Shown here piece after piece: positions 3,815 through 62,232 of a stretch of 64,000 nucleotides of DNA. Positions within the stretch are counted from its first letter, which is position 1. Each line of letters opens with the position of its first letter. The notes beneath the pieces are model-generated. The model was given only the letters and a program-made list of their open reading frames with translations. It was not told the origin of the DNA and did no database searches. The DNA lies in the sequence record MW879341.1; one strand, 5' to 3'. A program made the position numbers and the translations under genes.

Positions 3815-3816
3815 CA

Positions 3817-3843
3817 GGGGAGGACTTCGGTCCTCCTTTTATG
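3817..3843 (+). terminator. intrinsic terminator
   Basis: GGAGGAC-TTCG-GTCCTCC-TTTTATG. Confidence 0.85.
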
Positions 3844-3874
3844 CGTATATTTAAAAATTATCATAAGGCATTGT

Positions 3875-4471
3875 ATGAAAAACCTTGGTTTGTTACGTTC
3901 GACGCATTATCCTGAAATCTCAAACAAGCTACTGTACTTACCTTTGGTCGTAGCCCTCGGTATTCAATATACACCTACGTATAACCTGCTCGTACTCTGT
4001 AGTCTCTTTGGTTTGATGATAGCAATATCCTACTGGACGATTGTTAAAGACCACAGACAGTTGCGACAATTCGGATTACACCGACCCACTAAATGGTGTG
4101 CGTTGCTATTCCCACTCTACGTTATCTGGCGTAATAGAGAAACGGGTGGCGACAGGGCACCGACGATTGCGTTGATAGTCTATTTGATACTCAGCGTATG
4201 GATTACGGTATCTGGTACTAACAAAGCGATACACGATACCCTTGAAATTACCAGTTGCGTTAAGATCATAGAGCACCAACTGAGTGCTGGTCCACGGGAA
4301 CCCATCTGTCAACGCGTTACATTGACGCATGAGGACGAAGACAATAAGTGGACTGGTTATGCGCTACTGTCTGATGAAGCCACCATACCTGTTACGGTCT
4401 GGGGTAATCGCGGTGTGCGTAAAGTAGATGCAGAACTTTCTCCAGGTGTTATCACCACTATCTTTAATTAA
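3875..4471 (+). CDS. putative membrane protein
   Basis: several hydrophobic N-terminal segments, soluble C-terminal domain. Confidence 0.65.
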   Translation: MKNLGLLRSTHYPEISNKLLYLPLVVALGIQYTPTYNLLVLCSLFGLMIAISYWTIVKDHRQLRQFGLHRPTKWCALLFPLYVIWRNRETGGDRAPTIALIVYLILSVWITVSGTNKAIHDTLEITSCVKIIEHQLSAGPREPICQRVTLTHEDEDNKWTGYALLSDEATIPVTVWGNRGVRKVDAELSPGVITTIFN

Positions 4472-4869: not shown

Positions 4870-4899
4870 GGGGCAGGAAAGTCCTGCCCTCTTTTTTTT
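4870..4899 (+). terminator. intrinsic terminator
   Basis: GGGCAGGA-AAG-TCCTGCCC followed by T run. Confidence 0.85.
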
Positions 4900-4910
4900 G
4901 GAGACGCGCC

Positions 4911-5099
4911 ATGTATGTACTGTCAATTTACTTGCTGGTAGCCGCCTTATTCGATCTGTCCATTAAACGCAGTGCAAGGCGTTCTCGCTATCGCACACAA
5001 CCCCGTTGGTATGAAACCACAGGCCGTAGTATCGCAGCGTTAGCATGGCTTCCAGTAATGATCTACGTACTCTGGAAGAAACTTCGAGGTCGTCGGTAA
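4911..5099 (+). CDS. small basic membrane protein
   Basis: GGAG SD; two hydrophobic stretches, Arg-rich. Confidence 0.55.
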   Translation: MYVLSIYLLVAALFDLSIKRSARRSRYRTQPRWYETTGRSIAALAWLPVMIYVLWKKLRGRR

Positions 5100-5127
5100 T
5101 TTTATGTCACTTTAGGAGGACGTACCG

Positions 5128-5595
5128 ATGGCTGAAACTGTAGGGTATTCGGCACTCAAGCCAATACTCAATCCGAATAACAACATCCTCAAGTCAATAG
5201 ATACTCTTAAATACCCGAAAGGGGTGGAGCCTATTGCGTTGAAAAAGCTACACTGCACACTGATGTACGATGAGCGCAATAATATCAAAGGCGATTTCGA
5301 TATACCGCCAGAGATCTACCACGCTAACGTAATGGGTGTAGCCGTGTTGGGTAAGGCTGTAGTTCTGTTACTTTCGTCAGACGAGATTATGCGTCGGCAC
5401 TTTGAGTTACTGGACCTCGGCTTCAAATACAGCTTCGACAACTACGCACCACACCTTAGCATCGTCTATGCTGGCAATGATGCTGAAGACGGAGCGTTGG
5501 AGCAAGTGCGTGTGCAAGTACAGGCACTGTTAACGAAGAAGCTGATCCCAAGCCAGCTGTACTTTACGGACGAGTACTGGAAGCCCTGCGATTAA
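5128..5595 (+). CDS. acb1: 2H phosphoesterase, T4 gp57B/Acb1-like anti-CBASS nuclease
   Basis: two 2H motifs (KLHCTLMY, YAPHLSIVY) plus VLLLSSDEIMRRH..LG..YSFDNY and DEYWKP, matching the recalled T4 Acb1 pattern (KIHSTICY, LVLDSEYLRCRH..ALGATHDFDDYTPHITLSY, REYKEP). Confidence 0.7.
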   Translation: MAETVGYSALKPILNPNNNILKSIDTLKYPKGVEPIALKKLHCTLMYDERNNIKGDFDIPPEIYHANVMGVAVLGKAVVLLLSSDEIMRRHFELLDLGFKYSFDNYAPHLSIVYAGNDAEDGALEQVRVQVQALLTKKLIPSQLYFTDEYWKPCD

Positions 5596-5598
5596 CTC

Positions 5599-5633
5599 AA
5601 CTTTACCTAGGCTTCGGCTTGGGTAAAGTTTTA
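5599..5633 (+). terminator. intrinsic terminator
   Basis: AACTTTACCTAGGC-TTCG-GCTTGGGTAAAGTT. Confidence 0.75.
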
Positions 5634-5681: not shown

Positions 5682-6263
5682 ATGTCACAGCTCTATTTTA
5701 AGTATGGTCAGATGAACTGCGGTAAGACCACGACCCTGATTCAGAACGCGTACAACTACCAGGAACGTGGTATGCGTGTTATTGTTCTGAAGCCTGCGGT
5801 AGATACCCGCGAAACTAACGCTGCGGAAGTTGTCTCGCGTATCGGGCTGGTACACGAAGCCCGTTTAGTGTCTAAAGAAACCAACCTCTATCAGTTGGCA
5901 GTGCACTCCAACGATGCTGGTCGCTTACACTGCATCATGGTAGACGAATCACAGTTCCTGACTCCTGACCAGGTTGACCAACTGTCAGACGTAGTTGACA
6001 TGTTAGACATCCCTGTACTCTGCTTCGGGCTGCGTAGCGACTTCCAGGGTAATGCCTTCCCGGGTAGTCTGCGCCTGTTAACCATTGCTGACAAACTCGA
6101 AGAGATCAAGACTGTTTGCCATTGTGGTAAGAAAGCCACAATGGTTCTGCGCTTAGACGCTAACGGTGATGTTGTGCGTAGCGGTGAGCAGGTGCAGATT
6201 GGTGGTAATGAATCGTACGTCTCTGTGTGTCGTAAGCACTTTATCTCTGGACAGGTGAAATAA
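5682..6263 (+). CDS. tdk: thymidine kinase
   Basis: GQMNCGKTT Walker A, VDESQF, FGLRSDFQG, CHCGKKA Zn site, YVSVCRKH. Confidence 0.95.
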   Translation: MSQLYFKYGQMNCGKTTTLIQNAYNYQERGMRVIVLKPAVDTRETNAAEVVSRIGLVHEARLVSKETNLYQLAVHSNDAGRLHCIMVDESQFLTPDQVDQLSDVVDMLDIPVLCFGLRSDFQGNAFPGSLRLLTIADKLEEIKTVCHCGKKATMVLRLDANGDVVRSGEQVQIGGNESYVSVCRKHFISGQVK

Positions 6264-8522: not shown

Positions 8523-8524
8523 AC

Positions 8525-8573
8525 GGCATAAGTTGCTAAGGGGTCCTTCGGGACCCCTCATTTATGCCTTTTT
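8525..8573 (+). terminator. extended terminator hairpin
   Basis: GGCATAA...AGGGGTCC-TTCG-GGACCCCT...TTATGCC-TTTTT. Confidence 0.8.
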
Positions 8574-8597
8574 CTTTGTCTTATTGAATCAGTAAAA

Positions 8598-8624
8598 TTT
8601 CAAATATATATCATTTTAGTGTAA
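8598..8624 (+). promoter_or_regulatory. early (vRNAP-type) promoter motif, variant
   Basis: TTTCAAATATATATCATTTTAGTGTAA resembles the other seven copies. Confidence 0.55.
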
Positions 8625-8653
8625 TTAGCCCAACCACAAATAAGGAAAGCATT

Positions 8654-9352: not shown

Positions 9353-9423
9353 TACAAAATCCTAGGGTGAGGGGTAACCTCACCCACCTATGACGTCACT
9401 CTATAAATTAAGGAATACCCATA

Positions 9424-18521: not shown

Positions 18522-18524
18522 AGA

Positions 18525-18580
18525 CGGCATAGAGAGTCTCTTACCCCGCAAAGGGTAAGAGACTCTTATTTATGCTGTTT
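18525..18580 (+). terminator. extended terminator hairpin
   Basis: CGGCATA..GAGTCTCTTACCC-CGCAAA-GGGTAAGAGACTC..TATGCTG. Confidence 0.75.
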
Positions 18581-18693
18581 GATATTGCACTGGTAAGGGT
18601 ATTCAAGAAATTCTCTTATCACTGCAATGTCGCAGTAGAATAAAGGGGGTGTTGTAGCACCCCCTTTATAGATAACAAAGAAGGATAATTTCC

Positions 18694-38675: not shown

Positions 38676-40784
38676 ATGGCACTGAAACGTAACGAGTCAG
38701 ATAAGGCCGACGGGTCTTCTGGCATGGGGTCATTAGGGGACGCGCTTTTAGAAGCCGCCGCCAAGAAACCAGACAGCGCCGTAGCTGGCGAATTGTTAGC
38801 TGGAGGTGAACGTTCACTGGAGTCGGGTAATGCACAGGTAATTAACCCAGAGCCTGTAGCACAACCAATCCCAGCGGCTACACCAGTACAACCAGCGCCT
38901 ACCGCTCGTCCTGTACAACCAGCAGCACCAACCCATAACCACAATTCACAAACTTTCGAAAGCAAGGAACAAAAGATGGAACAAGTTAACGCATACTACG
39001 GTCTGGACGATTCTTACTCTGGCCTGAACCGTACTCTGGGTCTGACCTCTGGCGCTGTAGACGTCAACGAGTTCAAGAAGATCGCAGAGAGCATCCTGGA
39101 AAACGATCCGGCTGCATCTAAAAGCTCTTACGGCAAGCCTTCCTTTATTACTCTGGAAGCTGCTGCCCTGGGTCTGCCGTGCAACGCACTGGCGATCGTA
39201 ATGAACGCACGTAACGGCGCACAGAACGTGCCGCTGGTTTACACCCTGCTGATGGAACCATCAGAGCCGCTGGCACCACGCGAATACAATGTAGGCAACT
39301 ACACTGTTGAGCTGAAAGCTGTAACTGGCGATATCTACGGTGACGACTTCGCTCGTGCTGTGATGAACCACGTTAAGAAAGTGACCAACTCCGATGCCGA
39401 TCCAATCGACACCGGCGCTAACGTTGTACCGAACGGCCTGAGCCTGAAGGACGACGAAAACGCAACTCACGTTCGCAGCATCCTGTTCTTCGCATTCGGC
39501 GCACTGAACACCGTTTCCGACGTAATGTTCGGTACTCAGAAATTCCTGAGCCTGAAAGTGTCTGGCCAACAGCAGCTGCTGGCTAACATCAACTGGTCTG
39601 GCAAACAGCTGGAAACTGCTGCGGGTAACCCTATCCGTGCAGACATCGTGCTGACCACCACCAAGCGTGCTCGCTTCGACCGTAACCAGACTGCTGCACA
39701 CGCTGCCGCAACTCGTCCGGTAACTGCGCTGGCTGCGTACATGGACCTGTTCTACGCACCACCGCGTATCGAAGAGAACCCGAACCAGCAGCAGTACGGC
39801 TACAGCAGCTACGGTATCCCTGCGGATGCTAAAGTAATGTGGTACCCACGTATGGTTATCACTCGCTGCCTGCCACTGGGCAAAGTGATCAACGTTGGTG
39901 AACTGCTGCTGACTCTGGCGACTGCTACCGTTATCGGTACCAAGCACACCTGGATCAACGGCTTCCGTCCGGTGCGTGGTCAGGTTGGTATCCACGACAT
40001 CGGTGGTCTGGGTTGGGAACATGAGTTCGTGAAAGGCCAGCTGGCTCCTATCGATTCTCAGGACCCTAAATTCAGCCTGCCTGGTCTGCTGAGCCAGACT
40101 GTTGTAGACAACCTGTTCTACAGCATGGACATCGACGAAGTTGGTGACCTGACCTGGCTGGAAAGCTCACTGCTGGCAATTGCCCGTGGTGGTGAAGAAG
40201 CTGCTGCTGCGAACGATTACATCATCGCCGCTGCAAACGCACTGACCGATAACAAGTTCTCTGAGTGCTACGACGTGACTCAGCCGATTCTGGTTAACGA
40301 AGTCGTGCGCGTACACACTGGCTACTACATGGAAGGTGACCAGAAAGTTGACCTGCGTAACATCGACCACCTGGCAGTCCTGAACATGACCGGTAAGAAC
40401 GGTTTTGGTCTGGCACAGAAATGGTCTAACGCGCTGGTAGACTACCCGAACAACAACGCACTGTCTCAGCAGGAACGTCAGAACATCCTGGGTGAGCTGG
40501 CACCGAACGCTGTGATCAACGGCTACGCATCTCGCGTGACCTTCAACTCCGCGTTCCTGTTCGGTCTGGCGTCTGCGATCTCTAAAGCTGGCACCACTCT
40601 GGTTGTCAACGACGATGGCCGTCAGGCTACTCAGGAAGCTCGCGTGACTGCATCTTACGCGTCCTTCGGTCAGGGTAACGTGTACACCACCTCCCTGGTA
40701 TCTCAAGGTTACGGCAATGGTCAGAACCGTTCTCCGCGTGCTGTACAGACTCCTGTGTCTGGCAACATCTGGGGCAACATCTAA
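38676..40784 (+). CDS. chmA: chimallin (phage nuclear shell protein)
   Basis: 702 aa, strongest high-expression codon bias in the window, P/A/Q-rich N-tail, RADIVL..YMDLFY..PRMVIT core, position between DNAP and nvRNAP beta-prime as phiKZ gp54. Confidence 0.85.
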   Translation: MALKRNESDKADGSSGMGSLGDALLEAAAKKPDSAVAGELLAGGERSLESGNAQVINPEPVAQPIPAATPVQPAPTARPVQPAAPTHNHNSQTFESKEQKMEQVNAYYGLDDSYSGLNRTLGLTSGAVDVNEFKKIAESILENDPAASKSSYGKPSFITLEAAALGLPCNALAIVMNARNGAQNVPLVYTLLMEPSEPLAPREYNVGNYTVELKAVTGDIYGDDFARAVMNHVKKVTNSDADPIDTGANVVPNGLSLKDDENATHVRSILFFAFGALNTVSDVMFGTQKFLSLKVSGQQQLLANINWSGKQLETAAGNPIRADIVLTTTKRARFDRNQTAAHAAATRPVTALAAYMDLFYAPPRIEENPNQQQYGYSSYGIPADAKVMWYPRMVITRCLPLGKVINVGELLLTLATATVIGTKHTWINGFRPVRGQVGIHDIGGLGWEHEFVKGQLAPIDSQDPKFSLPGLLSQTVVDNLFYSMDIDEVGDLTWLESSLLAIARGGEEAAAANDYIIAAANALTDNKFSECYDVTQPILVNEVVRVHTGYYMEGDQKVDLRNIDHLAVLNMTGKNGFGLAQKWSNALVDYPNNNALSQQERQNILGELAPNAVINGYASRVTFNSAFLFGLASAISKAGTTLVVNDDGRQATQEARVTASYASFGQGNVYTTSLVSQGYGNGQNRSPRAVQTPVSGNIWGNI

Positions 40785-40868: not shown

Positions 40869-42188
40869 ATGCGAGTAACGGGCATAACGGCCATGATCGA
40901 TCTGAACGATCTACCTATCGAATACGGTATCTGCCAAGAGCTGACTGACTTCGATCGTGAGATTGCAGTATTGACATGTTCACCAACCATTGTAAATGAC
41001 ATAGACTCTTCAACTTTAGAGGGAAAGGAGAAGCTCAATAGTCTACTGATCACGAATTACAAAGGTGATGCTCTACCTATCTTACCAACATGTGACTGCG
41101 GTAAATACCAAGGTGAACAGTACGTTGGTACGGTATGTGAAGAGTGTAACTTTATGGTTACTTCACCCACTGAGAAACCCATTGAATCGAATGTTTGGAT
41201 TGCAGCACCAGAAGGCGTACTGGGGTTAATTAACCCGGCGTTCTGGGCGATGTTCTCTAAACTACTGACAGTGAACAACACCAACATCTTAGAGTGGTGT
41301 GTAAACTCCAGTTATCGTGCTCCAGTGGAAAACCTGCAAGTCTTCGATATCCTGTCCAACTACATCATGCGCGATGGGCAACGATTCAAGCGTGGTCTGA
41401 ATAATTTCATCGATAACTTCGATGGGATCATTGAATTGTTAACTGATGGTAAGACCCTCCGAAACATCGCACCTGCTATGCGCGTTAAGATGCGTGAGTT
41501 CTGTGTGATGAACCGTGGGCGTATTTTCTGTCAGTATCTACCAATCCCCAACAAGCTGGCAATCGTCATGGAGCATACCCCAACAGGTACATACTCCAAC
41601 GAAACTGCCGGTGGTACCGCACTGGATGCTGTGCGTAGTATCGCCAGTATTTATGCAACGGCATTACCCGTAACTGCTACTAAGAAAGAAAACCGCTGCG
41701 TATTAGCAACAAAGCAACTAGCGGGCTATTTCTCAGTACAGTTCACTACCTCGTTAGGTACGAAGAAAGGATGGAACCGTAAACACGGCGTAGGTACACG
41801 ACAGGACTTTAGTTTCCGTTGTGTTATCGCCAGTATCACCGAGCCACACTACTATGAAGAATGTCATCTTCCATGGGGTGTAGCAGTTGGTATCTTTACG
41901 GTACACTTGTCTAACTTCTTCCTGAAGCAGGGATTGGCACCGAATGAGATCGAACGTCGTCTACATTTTGCGGTAACGCATTATGACGAAGAGATCGACG
42001 GAATGTTCAAGAAGATCATTGCTGACTCAGATGGACTGGGTCCAGCTATCATCCTGAACCGTAACCCAACCCTGTCCAGTAAGTCGATTCAGTTGCTGCA
42101 AATCACCAAAGTCAAGACGGATGTCAAAGACGTTACTCTTGGTATCTCTGTATTGATTCTTAATAGTTTCAATGCCGACTTTGACGGT
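40869..42188 (+). CDS. nvRNAP beta-prime N-terminal subunit, exon 1 (phiKZ gp55-like)
   Basis: CDCG..CEEC Zn site, RQDFSFRCVI, NRNPTL, ends at NADFDG; 440 codons. Confidence 0.9.
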
Positions 42189-43564
42189 AGAGCGTTGCCG
42201 TCGTTAAACGCTTCTAATTGCTGGGAACTCTTGAAGGTAGCCTAACCACAACGCAATCCGTAAAGGATAATCGTGACGGTTTGAAAATAGGCTATTATGA
42301 GACAATCAGCAGCGAAGTCCTTCTTGTATTACCAGCTGGGTAGGATACTCGGTGAGAGGGATGTGCTCAACGGCCATCGAAAGCACGCAGACGCAATGTC
42401 TGTGGAAGCAAGTAGAGTAGGGGAAACCCGAAACGAAGTGACATGGATGTAAGATATGGTCTAAAGTACGGTGACGTGCGTTGGTGATGTCTGGAAGCAT
42501 CACCGAAGTCGAAAGACTAAGCTACCAACATGTTCTATGGAGACACTATGGAGTTAAGAACCATACCCGGTACAGCTGGGTATTCAGCTTCGCGAGACGG
42601 TCGGATATTCAACCCTGACGGTATTCAGCGAACTGAATACACTAACGGGGATGGGTACCTTACCGCATCCGTGAAGTTAACAGATGGTCGATGGCAAACC
42701 TTCGGCATACATCGGTTAGTAGCACTAGCATGGATAGAATGTCCGGGTAATCCAGACGACTATACCGTCAATCACATCGATACCGATATCACTAATAATG
42801 ACGTCGATAATCTGGAGTGGGTAACGGCTCAGGTTAATAACCTACATGCGAGTTTAATGCGGTTAGTTGTGGATAGACCAACAATCTACATGCTCGACGT
42901 CGACGGAAGTTATAGCTTCATCGATAACTTGCATATGGCAGCACAAGTGTTGTCAGTGGATGTTGGATTGGCTTGGGATATGGTACGTGATGGAATTGAA
43001 GTGAATGGGGCTAAGTTATTCCCAATCACTAATCACACCGTTCTACCCGACCAACTGAGAAAACCATCAATAGGTAGTGGTGTAGACGCCATACTGGTGG
43101 AAGTTCCGGTTAAAGTCAAATCTATCAGCACAGGGTGCGTTCTGAACTTTAAATCAATGGGAGCGGCAGCAACGCACTTTGGTGTATCTGCTAGCCACAT
43201 CTATCAGGCAATCTGCAAAGATAGGGTTCGTGTGTTCAAACGCGACTACGTCGTTGTTAAGTCTGAGGATGAATTCCCAGAAGTGGATGATGCGACAAAA
43301 GAGAAAAGTCTGGCAGCTGTGGGTAAGGCTACTTGGGGATGGAACAGTGTCAGTAAAGTACTGTATGTAACCGATAGCGCTAGCCAACTTATAAAGCTAA
43401 CTGGCCTCAGTAAGAAAGCGGTAACAACGCGACTCAAACGCGACGGTTATGGCGAATTGGGTGATTGGATATTTTCATATGAAGATCAGTCCAGTCGAAT
43501 CTTAGAAAGAATAAAGGGTTCCAGCCCTTCTTGATAATGAACAATGTTGGTAGTACATATTCAG
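42189..43564 (+). mobile_element. group I self-splicing intron (IA-like) with homing endonuclease
   Basis: 5' exon ends GACGGU pairing with IGS GCCGUC (42197-42202); P AATTGCTGGGAA (42216), Q AATCAGCAGC (42304), R/P7 GGCCA (about 42372), S AAGATATGGTC (42451); terminal G 43564; AGAGCGTT pairs with exon 2 GACGCTCT (P10). Confidence 0.9.
42548..43534 (+). CDS. intron-encoded HNH homing endonuclease (NUMOD4-HNH plus HTH-type repeats)
   Basis: GYSASRDGRI, HRLVALAW, VNHIDTDITNNDVDNLEWVT; GGAG SD before ATG 42548 (upstream ATG 42530 lies in a stem). Confidence 0.9.
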   Translation: MELRTIPGTAGYSASRDGRIFNPDGIQRTEYTNGDGYLTASVKLTDGRWQTFGIHRLVALAWIECPGNPDDYTVNHIDTDITNNDVDNLEWVTAQVNNLHASLMRLVVDRPTIYMLDVDGSYSFIDNLHMAAQVLSVDVGLAWDMVRDGIEVNGAKLFPITNHTVLPDQLRKPSIGSGVDAILVEVPVKVKSISTGCVLNFKSMGAAATHFGVSASHIYQAICKDRVRVFKRDYVVVKSEDEFPEVDDATKEKSLAAVGKATWGWNSVSKVLYVTDSASQLIKLTGLSKKAVTTRLKRDGYGELGDWIFSYEDQSSRILERIKGSSPS

Positions 43565-58120: not shown

Positions 58121-60265
58121 GTGAAAGTGGAATTACACAGTGATCTTTTCGGTATCGAGAATATCTACGGAAAGACTAACCAGTTGCACGTCATGAACTT
58201 GGGCATGGGTGCTAACTTGAACAGTTGGGCAGGTAATGACTCAGCGTCTCGCGCGCAGATGTTTACTAGCCATCTGGCTCAGGTTCCGGTTATTGCTAAT
58301 CCGAGTATTCGTCGTACCTTGACTGGTACTGAACGTGAGTATGGACATTACACGTTTAAGCAGCGTATTACAGAAGAAGGTTTGTTCTATCGTATTCTGG
58401 ATAAATACCCACTGCATCAGTTCCGCACCAACCCGCAGAAATTAGCGGTCTATCGTGCAACCGGTCATGGTCATAACACAGCCTATTATGGTGTGGTTGA
58501 CATCTCGACCTATAACATCCGACATCAGTACTTTGGGTTCATGTTTAAACCTAAAGGAAACAACCTGAACCACGTTCGTGAAAACGAACCAGCGGTAGAA
58601 GGTATGGTAATCTCCCAATCGCCATCTATTGACGAGCAGGGTAACCACCGTATGGGTGTCTCCAGTAACATGCTCTATATGTCATTGCATACAACGATTG
58701 AGGACGGGGTATTTGCAAGACGTAAATGGTTGGAGCGTTTCAAGTCCACAGGCATTGAAGGTCGTACAGCAATTACAGGCGATCGTTGCTACCTGATTAA
58801 CCTTTATGGTGACGACGTACATTATCGTGGTCATCCTGAGTTGGGTGGTAAGATTGCACAACACGGTATCGCGATGGCAGTTCGTGATTTCGATCCGTTG
58901 TTAGCTGTAGTTGAGATGACGCCAGAAGCACTGCGTGAACCAGACTTCGTTTTCGATAAACTGATCTATGGTAAGCCAGGCGCTGAACTCATCGACATTA
59001 CCGTGTATCATGACCACAATCTTGATCGCGTTAATAATGAAGAGAAAACCCCCGTTGGGATTGACCAGCAGTCTAAGCGCTATTATGAGGCACTGCACTC
59101 CCAGCAGATGAAGTTGATTTCACTCTATGAAGAACTCAAGCGTAAGCATGGGGACTCTCTGGTGTTGGAGCCTAACTTCCACCGTATGATTACGTGGGCG
59201 TATGCATTCACGAATCACAGTACGGTACAGCAACCACAAGGCAGTCGTGTAAACTTAACTTATCGTAGAGCGCCCGTTGGGGACTTCCGCACCGATCTGG
59301 TGTTCAAGTATGACATTATGCCGTCGGTAGGTTCTAAAGTCACCACAATGCATGGAGGCAAAGGCGTCGTAGTACGTATTGGTGAAGACCACGAAATGCC
59401 ACAGTGGGAAGACGGTACCATTGCAGACTTGGTGATGGATAATGACTCCAACATCAAACGTATGAACTTAGGTGGTGTATTTGAGCAAGCAACGAATGCT
59501 TTCTCTCGACAGGTAACTAAGTTAGTGCGTAATGTGATGTCCGATGCCACACTGATTCAAGCTCAGCGTTACGAACAGGCTTATGCTATCCTCGAAGAGT
59601 ATTACAGCATCGGCAGTCCGTTAATGCATGAGTTCATGAATCGCACCATGACAGAACCCCAACGCCGTGTGGGTCACGTCGACGCCGTAGTGAAGGATGG
59701 TATCTATCTCTGGTTACCACCGAACACGGAAGATATTGGTGCTGTATTGATTGACCGGTTAGAACGTCGTTATGGTCTGGAGATGCACCCAGTGCGTTAT
59801 CTGGATTCTCGCGGTGAGTACGTTTGGACCAAGCAGAAGATGTTGATTGCGGAAACGTATATCATCATGCTTGAGAAGAATGGCTTTGACTGGAGTAGTG
59901 TAGCGTCACCAAAACGCCAGCACTATGGTATCCTTGCCCGTATGACTAATATGGACAAGCACTCCACTCCGGGTCGTGAGAACGCGGTACGTAGTACGGG
60001 TGAAGCAGAGATTCGTCTGTTGTTGGCACTGCTGCCAGATTATATTGTGGCAGATATCCTCGACCGTCCGAATAACCCTGCGGCACACAAAGCAGAAGTC
60101 CGTGCTATTATCGGCGCAGCTAACCCAGCACAGATCGACATGGCGGTTGACCGTCGTAAGATCCCACTGGGTGGTAACCGTGCAATCCAATTCATTCGCC
60201 ACGTCATGTGGTGTTGTGGTATCGCACTGTCTCGTATGAAATCTAAAGTTGGGGGTAAACGGTAA
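58121..60265 (+). CDS. nvRNAP beta subunit, C-terminal part (phiKZ gp71-73-like), uninterrupted
   Basis: SASRAQM..SH, GSKVT.MHGGKGVV, KRMNLG, YIIMLEK, RSTGEAE.RL; GTG start. Confidence 0.9.
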   Translation: MKVELHSDLFGIENIYGKTNQLHVMNLGMGANLNSWAGNDSASRAQMFTSHLAQVPVIANPSIRRTLTGTEREYGHYTFKQRITEEGLFYRILDKYPLHQFRTNPQKLAVYRATGHGHNTAYYGVVDISTYNIRHQYFGFMFKPKGNNLNHVRENEPAVEGMVISQSPSIDEQGNHRMGVSSNMLYMSLHTTIEDGVFARRKWLERFKSTGIEGRTAITGDRCYLINLYGDDVHYRGHPELGGKIAQHGIAMAVRDFDPLLAVVEMTPEALREPDFVFDKLIYGKPGAELIDITVYHDHNLDRVNNEEKTPVGIDQQSKRYYEALHSQQMKLISLYEELKRKHGDSLVLEPNFHRMITWAYAFTNHSTVQQPQGSRVNLTYRRAPVGDFRTDLVFKYDIMPSVGSKVTTMHGGKGVVVRIGEDHEMPQWEDGTIADLVMDNDSNIKRMNLGGVFEQATNAFSRQVTKLVRNVMSDATLIQAQRYEQAYAILEEYYSIGSPLMHEFMNRTMTEPQRRVGHVDAVVKDGIYLWLPPNTEDIGAVLIDRLERRYGLEMHPVRYLDSRGEYVWTKQKMLIAETYIIMLEKNGFDWSSVASPKRQHYGILARMTNMDKHSTPGRENAVRSTGEAEIRLLLALLPDYIVADILDRPNNPAAHKAEVRAIIGAANPAQIDMAVDRRKIPLGGNRAIQFIRHVMWCCGIALSRMKSKVGGKR

Positions 60266-62232
60266 TGGTGGCAGTTGCAGTCAATGCGATTAATGCGAGA
60301 GAGATCCTCTCGCAGCCCATCGATCATCTGTGGGAAGTCTACAATCGACCTAAGTGTAAAATCGCCGTAGCGTTTGATAACGGCGTGGTTGAGACAACCG
60401 CAAGGGAACTACTGTTCTCTCAATACTTCTGGGAGTTCCACCGCCAGTATCCAGAAACACCTTTATTGGTGGAGCACATGATGGACCCTAAGCGTCGTCT
60501 GAATAAGAAGACGTCTCTGGAACTCATCGGTGCAGCTTTCTGGTCGGTCTGGGATCGTTACGGTGGACAGGTATCGTTAGACACGCTCCAACGCATGAGT
60601 TATGAAATCACCAACCGGGTATACAATGACATTGTTCTGCGTATGTCTGAGTATGTGACCAGTATCTCTGCGAAAGACTTCATTGATGTATTGCGACATC
60701 CTGAACTGATTGAAGCATTGGCTAAAGCCGTGCCTACTCAGAACAGTATCGCAAACGTGGGTCGTACGGTTCAAGAGATCTTGACACGCGAAGGTGAGTT
60801 GGTAGGTAACCGACCTGCCGAGTCTGCTAAGTCTGGATTGGTATCAGCGGGACAACAGAACCAGATCTTTGGTCTTCGTGGTTTCGTAACAGATATCGAT
60901 TCTAACGTATTCCCAACACCAATGATGACTAACTACGCATTGGGCATGCATCGTCTGTACGACTATGCTATCGAATCGCGTTCAGCGTCTAAAGCTCTGT
61001 TCTTTGCAAAAGATCCACTTGCAGACGTTGAGTACCTGAACCGTCAGCTTCAGCTGCTGGCACAGACTCTGAAACATCTGTTCAAAGGCGATTGTGGTTC
61101 AACCATGATGCTCCCTCTGACAATCAATACGTCGAGTGAGTTGAAGACCTACGCTGGTAAGTACTATTACGGCGAAGGTAATGAACTGTATCGCATTACC
61201 CCAGAAGATAAACATCTGGTTGGTAAGTCGGTGTTGGTACGTTCACCGATGGGTTGTCGATGCTTACCTCACCAGGGTGTGTGTCAAGCCTGTCTGGGTG
61301 AGATCTCCTTGCAGATTCCTGATGGTGGTAACTTAGGTCACCTGTCTGTCATTGAGCTCTGTTCTGGTGTATCTCAGAACGTACTGTCTACCAAACACCT
61401 TGATGGTAGTTCTACCATTGAGAAATTCCACATCGCCGATGGTGATCGTGCATTCTTATCAGCCGGCAAAGCTGATCATTTGATTGCACTGACGGAATCT
61501 CTGAAAGCTAAACATGCTGTGTTGACTGTACCGCAGTCTGCTGCATTTAACCTGACAGAGCTGCACCACGTACGTGACTTGACTGTACTGCCAATCACTC
61601 GTGTATCTGACATCGAATTCGTAACAGTAACCTGTGACGACATTAACGGTGAACGTGTCACGATGCCATTGTCTGTAGCTATTGGTTCTCGTCACTCTAG
61701 TTTCACCACGCCATTCCTTGCCTATATTAAACGTGTAGGTTGGGTAGCCACAGAAGACCGTGGTTATGAGATTGATCTCAGTGGTTGGGACTTCAGTAAA
61801 CCTGTCTTTGAGTTGCCGCTGAAGAACATCAACACGATGGAGTTCATGTCAGAAGTTGCAGACATCATCAAGTTCAAACGCCTGCGTCGTCGTCGTACGA
61901 AGCGTGCTAAAGAAATGGCAATGTCTGAAATTGAATTGGCTGCACTGGTGGTGGAACTGCACGATACCGTTAACAAACGTTTCGAGTATAACATCGCTCA
62001 CTGTGAACTGATTCTGGCACTGTGTCTGATTCGTGATGCTAAGTCTGGTGATTTCCGATTCCCGGCACCAGATGAACCTCGTGAGTTCGCACCCTTCAAA
62101 GAGTTGATGTCTAACCGCAGTATGGGTCAGGCTTATGCCTTTGAGAAACACGGACAAGTTATCCTGAATATCGATAGCTTCTTCAACCCACAAAGGCCAT
62201 CCCACCCTATGGACCGTATTTACGTACCGTAA
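60265..62232 (+). CDS. nvRNAP beta-prime C-terminal subunit (phiKZ gp74-like)
   Basis: GDCGS, RSPMGC..GVCQACLG Zn site, SQNVLSTKH; TAATG coupling. Confidence 0.9.
   Translation: MVAVAVNAINAREILSQPIDHLWEVYNRPKCKIAVAFDNGVVETTARELLFSQYFWEFHRQYPETPLLVEHMMDPKRRLNKKTSLELIGAAFWSVWDRYGGQVSLDTLQRMSYEITNRVYNDIVLRMSEYVTSISAKDFIDVLRHPELIEALAKAVPTQNSIANVGRTVQEILTREGELVGNRPAESAKSGLVSAGQQNQIFGLRGFVTDIDSNVFPTPMMTNYALGMHRLYDYAIESRSASKALFFAKDPLADVEYLNRQLQLLAQTLKHLFKGDCGSTMMLPLTINTSSELKTYAGKYYYGEGNELYRITPEDKHLVGKSVLVRSPMGCRCLPHQGVCQACLGEISLQIPDGGNLGHLSVIELCSGVSQNVLSTKHLDGSSTIEKFHIADGDRAFLSAGKADHLIALTESLKAKHAVLTVPQSAAFNLTELHHVRDLTVLPITRVSDIEFVTVTCDDINGERVTMPLSVAIGSRHSSFTTPFLAYIKRVGWVATEDRGYEIDLSGWDFSKPVFELPLKNINTMEFMSEVADIIKFKRLRRRRTKRAKEMAMSEIELAALVVELHDTVNKRFEYNIAHCELILALCLIRDAKSGDFRFPAPDEPREFAPFKELMSNRSMGQAYAFEKHGQVILNIDSFFNPQRPSHPMDRIYVP

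Follow-up and report, generated by a model that had tools for sequence, protein, structure and literature searches.

We analysed a 64,000-nucleotide (nt) stretch of the genome of Erwinia phage pEa_SNUABM_54 (GenBank MW879341.1, 272,635 bp; host Erwinia amylovora), referred to here as the window, in which position 1 corresponds to position 186,001 of the record. An open reading frame (ORF) at 5128..5595 on the + strand starts with ATG, encodes 155 amino acids (aa) followed by a stop codon and contains no internal stops. The GenBank entry has the same bounds (QXO11044.1, locus tag pEaSNUABM54_00218) and is labelled 'hypothetical protein', as is every other coding sequence seen in MW879341.1. The original prediction for this gene was an Acb1-like phosphodiesterase, directed against CBASS, an antiphage defence in which cyclic oligonucleotides serve as signals, in a nucleus-forming phage. 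The two motifs of the two-histidine (2H) phosphodiesterases that it had pointed out, HCT and HLS, are present in the reading frame: the first catalytic motif, H42-C43-T44, is encoded at 5251..5259 (+) and the second, H109-L110-S111, which is of the HxS type, at 5452..5460 (+). The ORF, the family and structure matches, the predicted fold and the pattern of substitution described below make us highly confident that the product of 5128..5595 (+) is an Acb1-family 2H phosphodiesterase.

The 155-aa protein matched the Pfam model of Acb1, PF23474, with an expectation value (E) of 4.6e-14 and 52.8 bits, where the gathering score is 27. Because of this match and of the matches to Acb1 structures in the PDB, the sequence motifs are beyond chance. 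The 2_5_RNA_ligase2 model (PF13563) reached 13.4 bits only (threshold 27), and the Pfam scan gave no match of the protein to PF02834 (LigT/ThpR). NCBIfam had no match for the Erwinia protein, nor for T4 Acb1. When the single sequence was searched against all PDB chains, the only protein found was the Acb1 from phage FBB1 of Erwinia (7T26/7T27; E 7.8e-5), and the alignment pairs both histidine motifs. Among 1.84 billion representative proteins, searched exhaustively, 178 relatives had E<=0.001, and a search of 90% clusters found ten close relatives, 55-99% identical to the query. From the hits of both searches we built a family alignment of 81 proteins, to which all conservation counts given below refer. 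All 81 aligned relatives matched PF23474. The profile of the 81 relatives matched 7T26 Acb1 in the PDB with E 2.7e-20 and the Burkholderia phage BCSR5 enzyme (9Q2G/9Q2Y, the chains of which are named Acb1) with 1.8e-17; among other 2H enzymes, a plant cyclic phosphodiesterase followed with E 4e-3 and E. coli LigT with 1.9. In a tblastn search of 50,697 phage records with the protein as the query, T4 and FBB1 were not reached, even at E<=1.

For a direct comparison, T4 gp57B (NP_049750.1, the accession given in PMC9117128) was taken from positions 3956-4411, - strand, of a piece of the T4 genome (NC_000866). BLASTP aligned the two proteins with 31% identity over 85 residues (E 2e-9) and placed H42/T44 on T4 H44/T46 and H109/S111 on T4 H113/T115. 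When the family profile was aligned with T4 gp57B using hhalign, 141 columns were matched with a probability of 99.2% and E 3.6e-19, and both catalytic histidines were in register. The likeness to T4 gp57B/Acb1 pointed out in the original prediction thus holds for the flanking blocks, which do align in both comparisons; the similarity is modest.

The AlphaFold2 (AF2) model made with the 81-sequence alignment had a mean predicted local distance difference test score (pLDDT) of 93.7 and a predicted template-modelling score (pTM) of 0.85. In a Foldseek search of this model against the PDB, ranks 1-5 were all Acb1-family structures (9Q2Y, 9Q2G, 7T26 and 7T27), with E from 4.3e-6 to 4.5e-5 and template-modelling (TM) scores of up to 0.75. 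The next were a bacterial cyclic phosphodiesterase (E 4.5e-4) and E. coli LigT (5LDJ, E 1.6e-2). The best fold match was therefore to the Acb1 family and not to LigT/ThpR, the result that the original prediction had named as contrary to it. In BFVD, a database of predicted viral structures, the best named matches were entries called 'Anti-CBASS protein Acb1' from the jumbo phages pEt-SU, fHe-Yen9-04, RisingSun, JA29, Miami and PaBG, with TM scores of up to 0.83.

These searches bear on another explanation, in which the gene encodes a generic 2H phosphodiesterase acting on RNA ends (LigT/ThpR-like or a '2'-5' RNA ligase') for RNA repair or nucleotide salvage. The 2H fold and the two HxT/S motifs are common to the whole superfamily, the next gene encodes a thymidine kinase, an enzyme of nucleotide metabolism, and the protein matched PHROG 755 (E 6e-20), which is labelled 'RNA ligase' as are many database records of its relatives. 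That label, however, is a legacy name, which T4 57B also still carries in RefSeq, although T4 57B has been shown experimentally to be Acb1 (PMC9117128). Matches of the LigT type were far weaker throughout (13.4 vs 27 bits on the Pfam scale, PDB profile E 1.9, and Foldseek 1.6e-2 vs 4e-6 for Acb1), and enzymes of the LigT type, at 165-190 aa, exceed the 155-aa protein by about 30 residues. We therefore regard an RNA-end enzyme as improbable.

Acb1-like domains also occurred within larger proteins. One forms the C-terminus of the portal protein of cyanophage Pam3 (8HDS chain A, residues 482-593, E 2.3e-9), and others are fused in BFVD proteins of 883-1134 aa and in relatives of 1009 aa and 510 aa. 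The long fusion proteins include proteins annotated as 'RNA ligase' or as structural proteins of Gordonia phages. These cases hint that some phages may carry an Acb1-like domain in the virion.

The catalytic residues are conserved in the family alignment. H42 and T44 are present in 81/81 relatives and H109 in 79/81, and position 111 is occupied by S in 58/81 and by T in 23/81. In the comparison of the gene with that of a 72%-identical metagenomic relative, the nonsynonymous value (pN) was 0.196 and the synonymous value (pS) 0.771, with synonymous sites saturated. The Acb1-like gene is therefore under purifying selection. The fusions of Acb1-like domains to large virion proteins, such as the Pam3 portal protein and the 883-1134-aa phage proteins, would suit the idea that the product is a remnant that has lost its activity, or else has a structural or binding role in which the fold is retained but catalysis is not. 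An intact catalytic tetrad that is conserved among relatives, strong purifying selection and a compact, confident AF2 model all speak against that idea, and we consider it very improbable.

In the published structures and assays of T4 and FBB1 Acb1, the ligand is stacked by Y12, W74, F107 and W147, E141 reads the adenine N6, and residues 145-152 form a C-terminal lid (PMC9117128). A ring of more than three bases would clash in the closed pocket and is thereby excluded, E141 imposes a requirement for adenosine, and canonical Acb1 leaves cyclic tetra-adenylate (cA4) uncleaved (PMC9117128). The assay substrates suggested in the original prediction included this ring. We placed the contact residues on the Erwinia protein via the T4 alignment. 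A mapping of the published residue numbers onto the 7T26 chain was dropped; the histidine spacing there is 70 and the published spacing is 69, and because of this misfit the numbers were taken as those of T4. Two of the stacking positions are retained: Y7 (T4 Y12) is Y in 74/81 relatives, and position 103 (T4 F107) is F or Y in 74/81.

Several points weigh against the reading that the protein acts as the characterised Acb1 enzymes do. Its PF23474 score of 52.8 bits is modest compared with the 202.7 bits of T4 Acb1. The T4 loop that carries W74, of about 7 residues, is absent in the clade of the pEa_SNUABM_54 protein, where L74/G75 are aligned instead. At the position of T4 E141 the protein has K152. 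Nor is there a C-terminal lid with W147, since the chain stops 6 residues after E149 (T4 E138), so that its end at D155 aligns with T4 K144. Further, the neighbours are a thymidine kinase gene and genes without known function, with no known anti-defence genes among them, and the assignment of a promoter to the gene consists of a short motif plus an analogy to phiKZ. Our literature search found no biochemical data on any jumbo-phage Acb1, and a 2026 review names Tad1 as so far the sole anti-defence protein described in jumbo phages (PMC13282480).

The absence of the lid, the W74 loop and E141 means that the specificity may differ from that of T4/FBB1 Acb1. Position 152 is E in 37/81 relatives and K in 10/81, and K152 is a trait of the pEa_SNUABM_54 clade only. 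The short tail, of 6-9 residues after the E149 column, is found in 70/81 relatives. An extra helix lies at about residues 121-137, at a gap in T4, and W151 is W in 37/81. It is tempting to speculate that W151 could take over the stacking role, or that W151 or the extra helix stands in for the lid. In the BCSR5 enzyme 9Q2G, the profile alignment stops at residue 152 of the 165-residue chain, and the C-terminus is apparently as short; because this short-tailed enzyme was deposited in open- and closed-lid states, the lid may be formed by another element of the fold. A literature search for a paper on the BCSR5 structures 9Q2G/9Q2Y found none, and one result concerned another phage, BCSR52.

An Acb1-family enzyme with a shifted substrate range, acting on rings with other bases, on cA4 or cyclic hexa-adenylate (cA6), or on other 3'-5'-linked messengers, would still serve counter-defence. 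The loss of the very elements by which T4/FBB1 Acb1 bars large rings and demands adenosine, the extra helix, and a short tail that is a rule of the subfamily and common to the Chimalliviridae homologues with their W..C.D-type tail are consistent with such a shift, as is the exposure of nucleus-forming phages to type III CRISPR signalling (PMC13282480). The same helix or W151 may, however, form an equivalent lid, the lid of 9Q2G/9Q2Y may sit elsewhere in the fold, E is kept at position 152 in many relatives, and the subfamily has no ligand-bound structure or assay behind it. We judge a shifted range to be unlikely, though it is the likeliest of the alternatives. A bolder form of it, in which the pocket of the lid-less chimallivirus Acb1 is opened or remodelled and accepts the type III CRISPR rings cA4/cA6 that canonical Acb1 does not cut, would be a long shot. 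If true, the enzyme would represent a ring nuclease of a new kind, adapted to phages with a protective shell, and type III is the only CRISPR type for which exposure of nucleus-forming phages is known (PMC13282480).

We consider it probable that the protein, like Acb1, targets immune signals that are cyclic di- or trinucleotides. From homology, we infer cyclic-nucleotide hydrolysis and a role in counter-defence; the chemistry is very likely that of Acb1 and the substrates are possibly different. The protein would be a small, single-domain, metal-independent 2H phosphodiesterase modelled on T4 and FBB1 Acb1, for which the mechanism and substrates of the family have been described (PMC9117128). 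H42 and H109 would serve as the acid-base pair, and T44 and S111 would hold the scissile phosphate. The 2'-OH would attack the 3'-5' bond of a cyclic di- or trinucleotide, with a 2',3'-cyclic phosphate as an intermediate, and the ring would open, leaving a linear molecule that has lost the ability to activate the effector. The RNA polymerase of the phage itself would transcribe the gene, possibly from the TATG at 5103-5106, a start that would also set the timing of expression, and translation would take place in the cytoplasm. The enzyme located there would clear the diffusible signals of CBASS, and possibly the cyclic tri-adenylate (cA3) of type III CRISPR, against which a shell of protein around the DNA is no barrier, and the phage would benefit accordingly.

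The premise of a nucleus-forming phage, also part of the original prediction, is supported at the level of the genome. A homologue of chimallin, the nuclear shell protein, is encoded at 38676..40784 (+). It matched phrog_4795 with E 9.5e-85 over nearly the whole profile, PF25677 with 133 bits, and the solved chimallins of 201phi2-1, Goslar and PhiPA3 with E from 2e-26 to 2e-18 (7SQQ/8IGG, E 2e-26); its identity to the chimallins of isolates is at most ~28%. Genes of a split multisubunit phage RNA polymerase lie at 58121..60265 and 60265..62232 (phrog_3295 and phrog_3015), and the RNA polymerase beta'-like product of 40869..42245 showed a match to Rpb1 domain 2 just below the threshold (24.9 vs 25.3 bits). 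Because of the divergent chimallin plus the split RNA polymerase genes, pEa_SNUABM_54 looks like a divergent, unrecognised chimallivirus-like lineage, for which a nucleus is predicted from the genes. NCBI lists the phage under unclassified Caudoviricetes, and its group is given as 'Unknown' in a 2024 review (PMC11512310). Our literature search found no imaging of a compartment for pEa_SNUABM_54. About 300 nt downstream of 40869..42245 is an HNH endonuclease gene at 42530-43534 (PF13392, E 9e-8), the product of which is possibly a homing endonuclease, and a small annotated ORF (42297-42452) lies between the two.

The Acb1-like gene is flanked by signals on both sides. Upstream, the sequence TTTTATG (5100..5106, +), a T-run plus TATG, directly follows the stop codon of a 62-aa hydrophobic ORF (4911..5099, +; ORF call and annotation), and a Shine-Dalgarno sequence, AGGAGG (5116..5121, +), ends 6 nt before the ATG. 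Downstream, a terminator-like hairpin (5599..5630, +) with a 14-bp stem and a UUCG loop is followed by TTTTACTATG. Its folding free energy (dG) is -20 kcal/mol with a z-score of -5.8, and 0/200 shuffled sequences were equally stable. The terminator scan missed this hairpin, and RNA folding recovered it. Both flanks are kept in relatives: the upstream motif as TAATT[T/C]TATG, and the hairpin stem with compensatory changes, with TTTTAYTATG downstream of it in two relatives. The description of the gene as having its own TATG leader and terminator, as given in the original prediction, was thus fair.

In phiKZ, the late promoter of the non-virion RNA polymerase is a TATG, and transcription starts at its G (PMC4666361). 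By this analogy, TTTTATG is a putative promoter of the same type, and G5106 is a possible start. In support of this, TTTATG was enriched between genes, with 8/20 copies in 9.3% of the sequence (binomial P 2.6e-4), a count matched by 1/2000 composition-matched shuffles. Plain TATG showed no intergenic enrichment (6.3 vs 5.0 per kb), and a scan for sigma-70 promoters around the gene gave 3 sites vs 2.5 expected by chance. The TTTTACTATG after the hairpin may in turn act as the promoter of the thymidine kinase gene. There is no hairpin between the 62-aa ORF and the Acb1-like gene, and co-transcription of the two is therefore possible; a terminator-like hairpin at 4870-4890 precedes the 62-aa ORF. 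DNA homologous to this ORF is present in metagenomic relatives, where no gene was called.

The gene directly downstream of the Acb1-like gene (5682..6263, +) is annotated as 'hypothetical' in the record and encodes a thymidine kinase (PF00265, E 1.2e-52). In metagenomic relatives, on contigs of 138-271 kb, the Acb1-like gene also lies directly upstream of a thymidine kinase gene, and the order of this pair followed by PhoH is kept in relatives. Junctions of a hairpin, a T-run and then TATG recur across the window (at 366-425, 3815-3874, 8523-8653, 9353-9423, 18522-18693 and others), with hairpins that are GC-rich and often have a UUCG loop; they look like terminator-promoter units that split the + strand gene array into short units. 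Further, an AT-rich motif, TTTCA[AG]ATATATAT[TC]A then ..TAGTG, was found at 8604, 19107, 25211, 27903 and 53020 (+). All five copies precede a gene, and the four that fall in the annotated part are intergenic; none of the five is directly upstream of the Acb1-like gene. This motif, which was derived from the window, is a candidate for a second promoter class and may resemble the early promoters of phiKZ. No tRNA genes were found in the 64,000-nt window.

The closest homologues from isolates, at 32-37% identity, were those of Klebsiella phage N1M2, Pseudomonas phage OBP, Erwinia phage AH04 and Aeromonas phages PS1 and D3. N1M2, OBP, AH04 and PS1 belong to Nimduovirus, Petsuvirus, Meadowvirus and Ferozepurvirus, respectively, which are genera of Chimalliviridae, as are Risingsunvirus and Miamivirus. 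In a search of IMG/VR with a 7-sequence alignment, 9/17 related loci were on contigs >200 kb. In OBP and N1M2, a gene annotated as a putative virion structural protein follows the Acb1-like gene, and the Acb1-like protein of AH04 has an N-terminal extension of ~88 residues, for a total of 241 aa.

The kind of gene and the idea behind it are already known; what is new is the annotation of the gene and of the phage. The Acb1 reading is an ordinary one, as genes of this kind are common among Erwinia phages and nucleus-forming phages alike. According to a 2026 survey, acb1 is the commonest anti-defence gene of 227 Erwinia phages, with 61 genomes, and type I CBASS occurs in E. amylovora genomes (PMC13480210). 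In a 2025 survey of 406 chimallin/PhuZ phages, anti-CBASS is listed as one of the three anti-defence types with the highest numbers (PMC12625630), and a 2026 review notes that phosphodiesterases may serve jumbo phages as a means against signalling defences (PMC13282480). The argument of the original prediction, that an Acb1 covers a gap in shell-based protection, is reasonable and is not new, as it has already been published (PMC13282480, PMC12625630). The present gene would be a further example for the view, found in the literature, that a shell does not free phages from the need for tools against diffusible immune signals. Further, a function-level name is supplied for one of ~320 'hypothetical' genes of a fire-blight phage, and an unclassified phage is placed among the jumbo phages that form a nucleus. 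Beyond annotation, the only part that possibly matters is how the chimallivirus-type Acb1 subfamily diverges in structure from the two enzymes that have been characterised.

When compared with known systems, the Erwinia protein resembles T4 Acb1 (gene 57B), the founding anti-CBASS nuclease, in being a small single-domain 2H phosphoesterase of ~150 aa that belongs to PF23474 and has the stacking residues Y12 and F107 as Y7 and F103. It differs in its second motif, which is HxT in T4 and HxS here, and in gene neighbourhood: the T4 gene adjoins ipI and 57A, whereas the Erwinia gene adjoins thymidine kinase. Acb1 of FBB1, a phage of the same host genus Erwinia, was solved as the apo form (7T26) and with the 3'3'-cyclic GMP-AMP (cGAMP) product (7T27). 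It is the top sequence match among solved structures, and 7T26 has the same fold as the model (Foldseek E 8.9e-6, TM 0.65/0.73), whereas the ligand-closed 7T27 fits worse (TM 0.56/0.61); the other differences are as for T4. The BCSR5 phosphodiesterase (9Q2G with a closed lid, 9Q2Y with an open lid) is the top fold match (E 4.3e-6, TM 0.75/0.73), and its profile alignment continues through the extra helix to profile position 138, but its identity to the Erwinia protein is 15-16% only. LigT/ThpR and other 2H cyclic phosphodiesterases share the superfamily fold and the two-histidine chemistry; in contrast, they are larger proteins acting on RNA ends, and their scores are far under the threshold.

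Within Chimalliviridae, the four homologues scanned (N1M2 gp040, OBP_061, AH04 gp67 and that of PS1) passed PF23474 and share the extra helix, the short C-terminus and the W..C.D-type tail with the Erwinia protein, and the protein of Erwinia phage RisingSun (A0A223LHU1), named Acb1 in UniProt, is a fold match in BFVD. Unlike the pEa_SNUABM_54 clade with its K152, the Chimalliviridae homologues have E, D or N at this position, and they have a longer loop after the conserved G75. In OBP, AH04 and N1M2, a subunit gene of a phage RNA polymerase is followed 2-3 genes later by the Acb1-like gene, a position conserved in these three genera, whereas the pEa_SNUABM_54 gene is upstream of thymidine kinase. 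The last comparison is with Tad1 of phiKZ, which shares the presumed purpose of clearing diffusible immune messengers in a nucleus-forming phage (PMC13282480). Tad1 is a sponge of unrelated fold that sequesters the signals, whereas the Erwinia protein would hydrolyse them.

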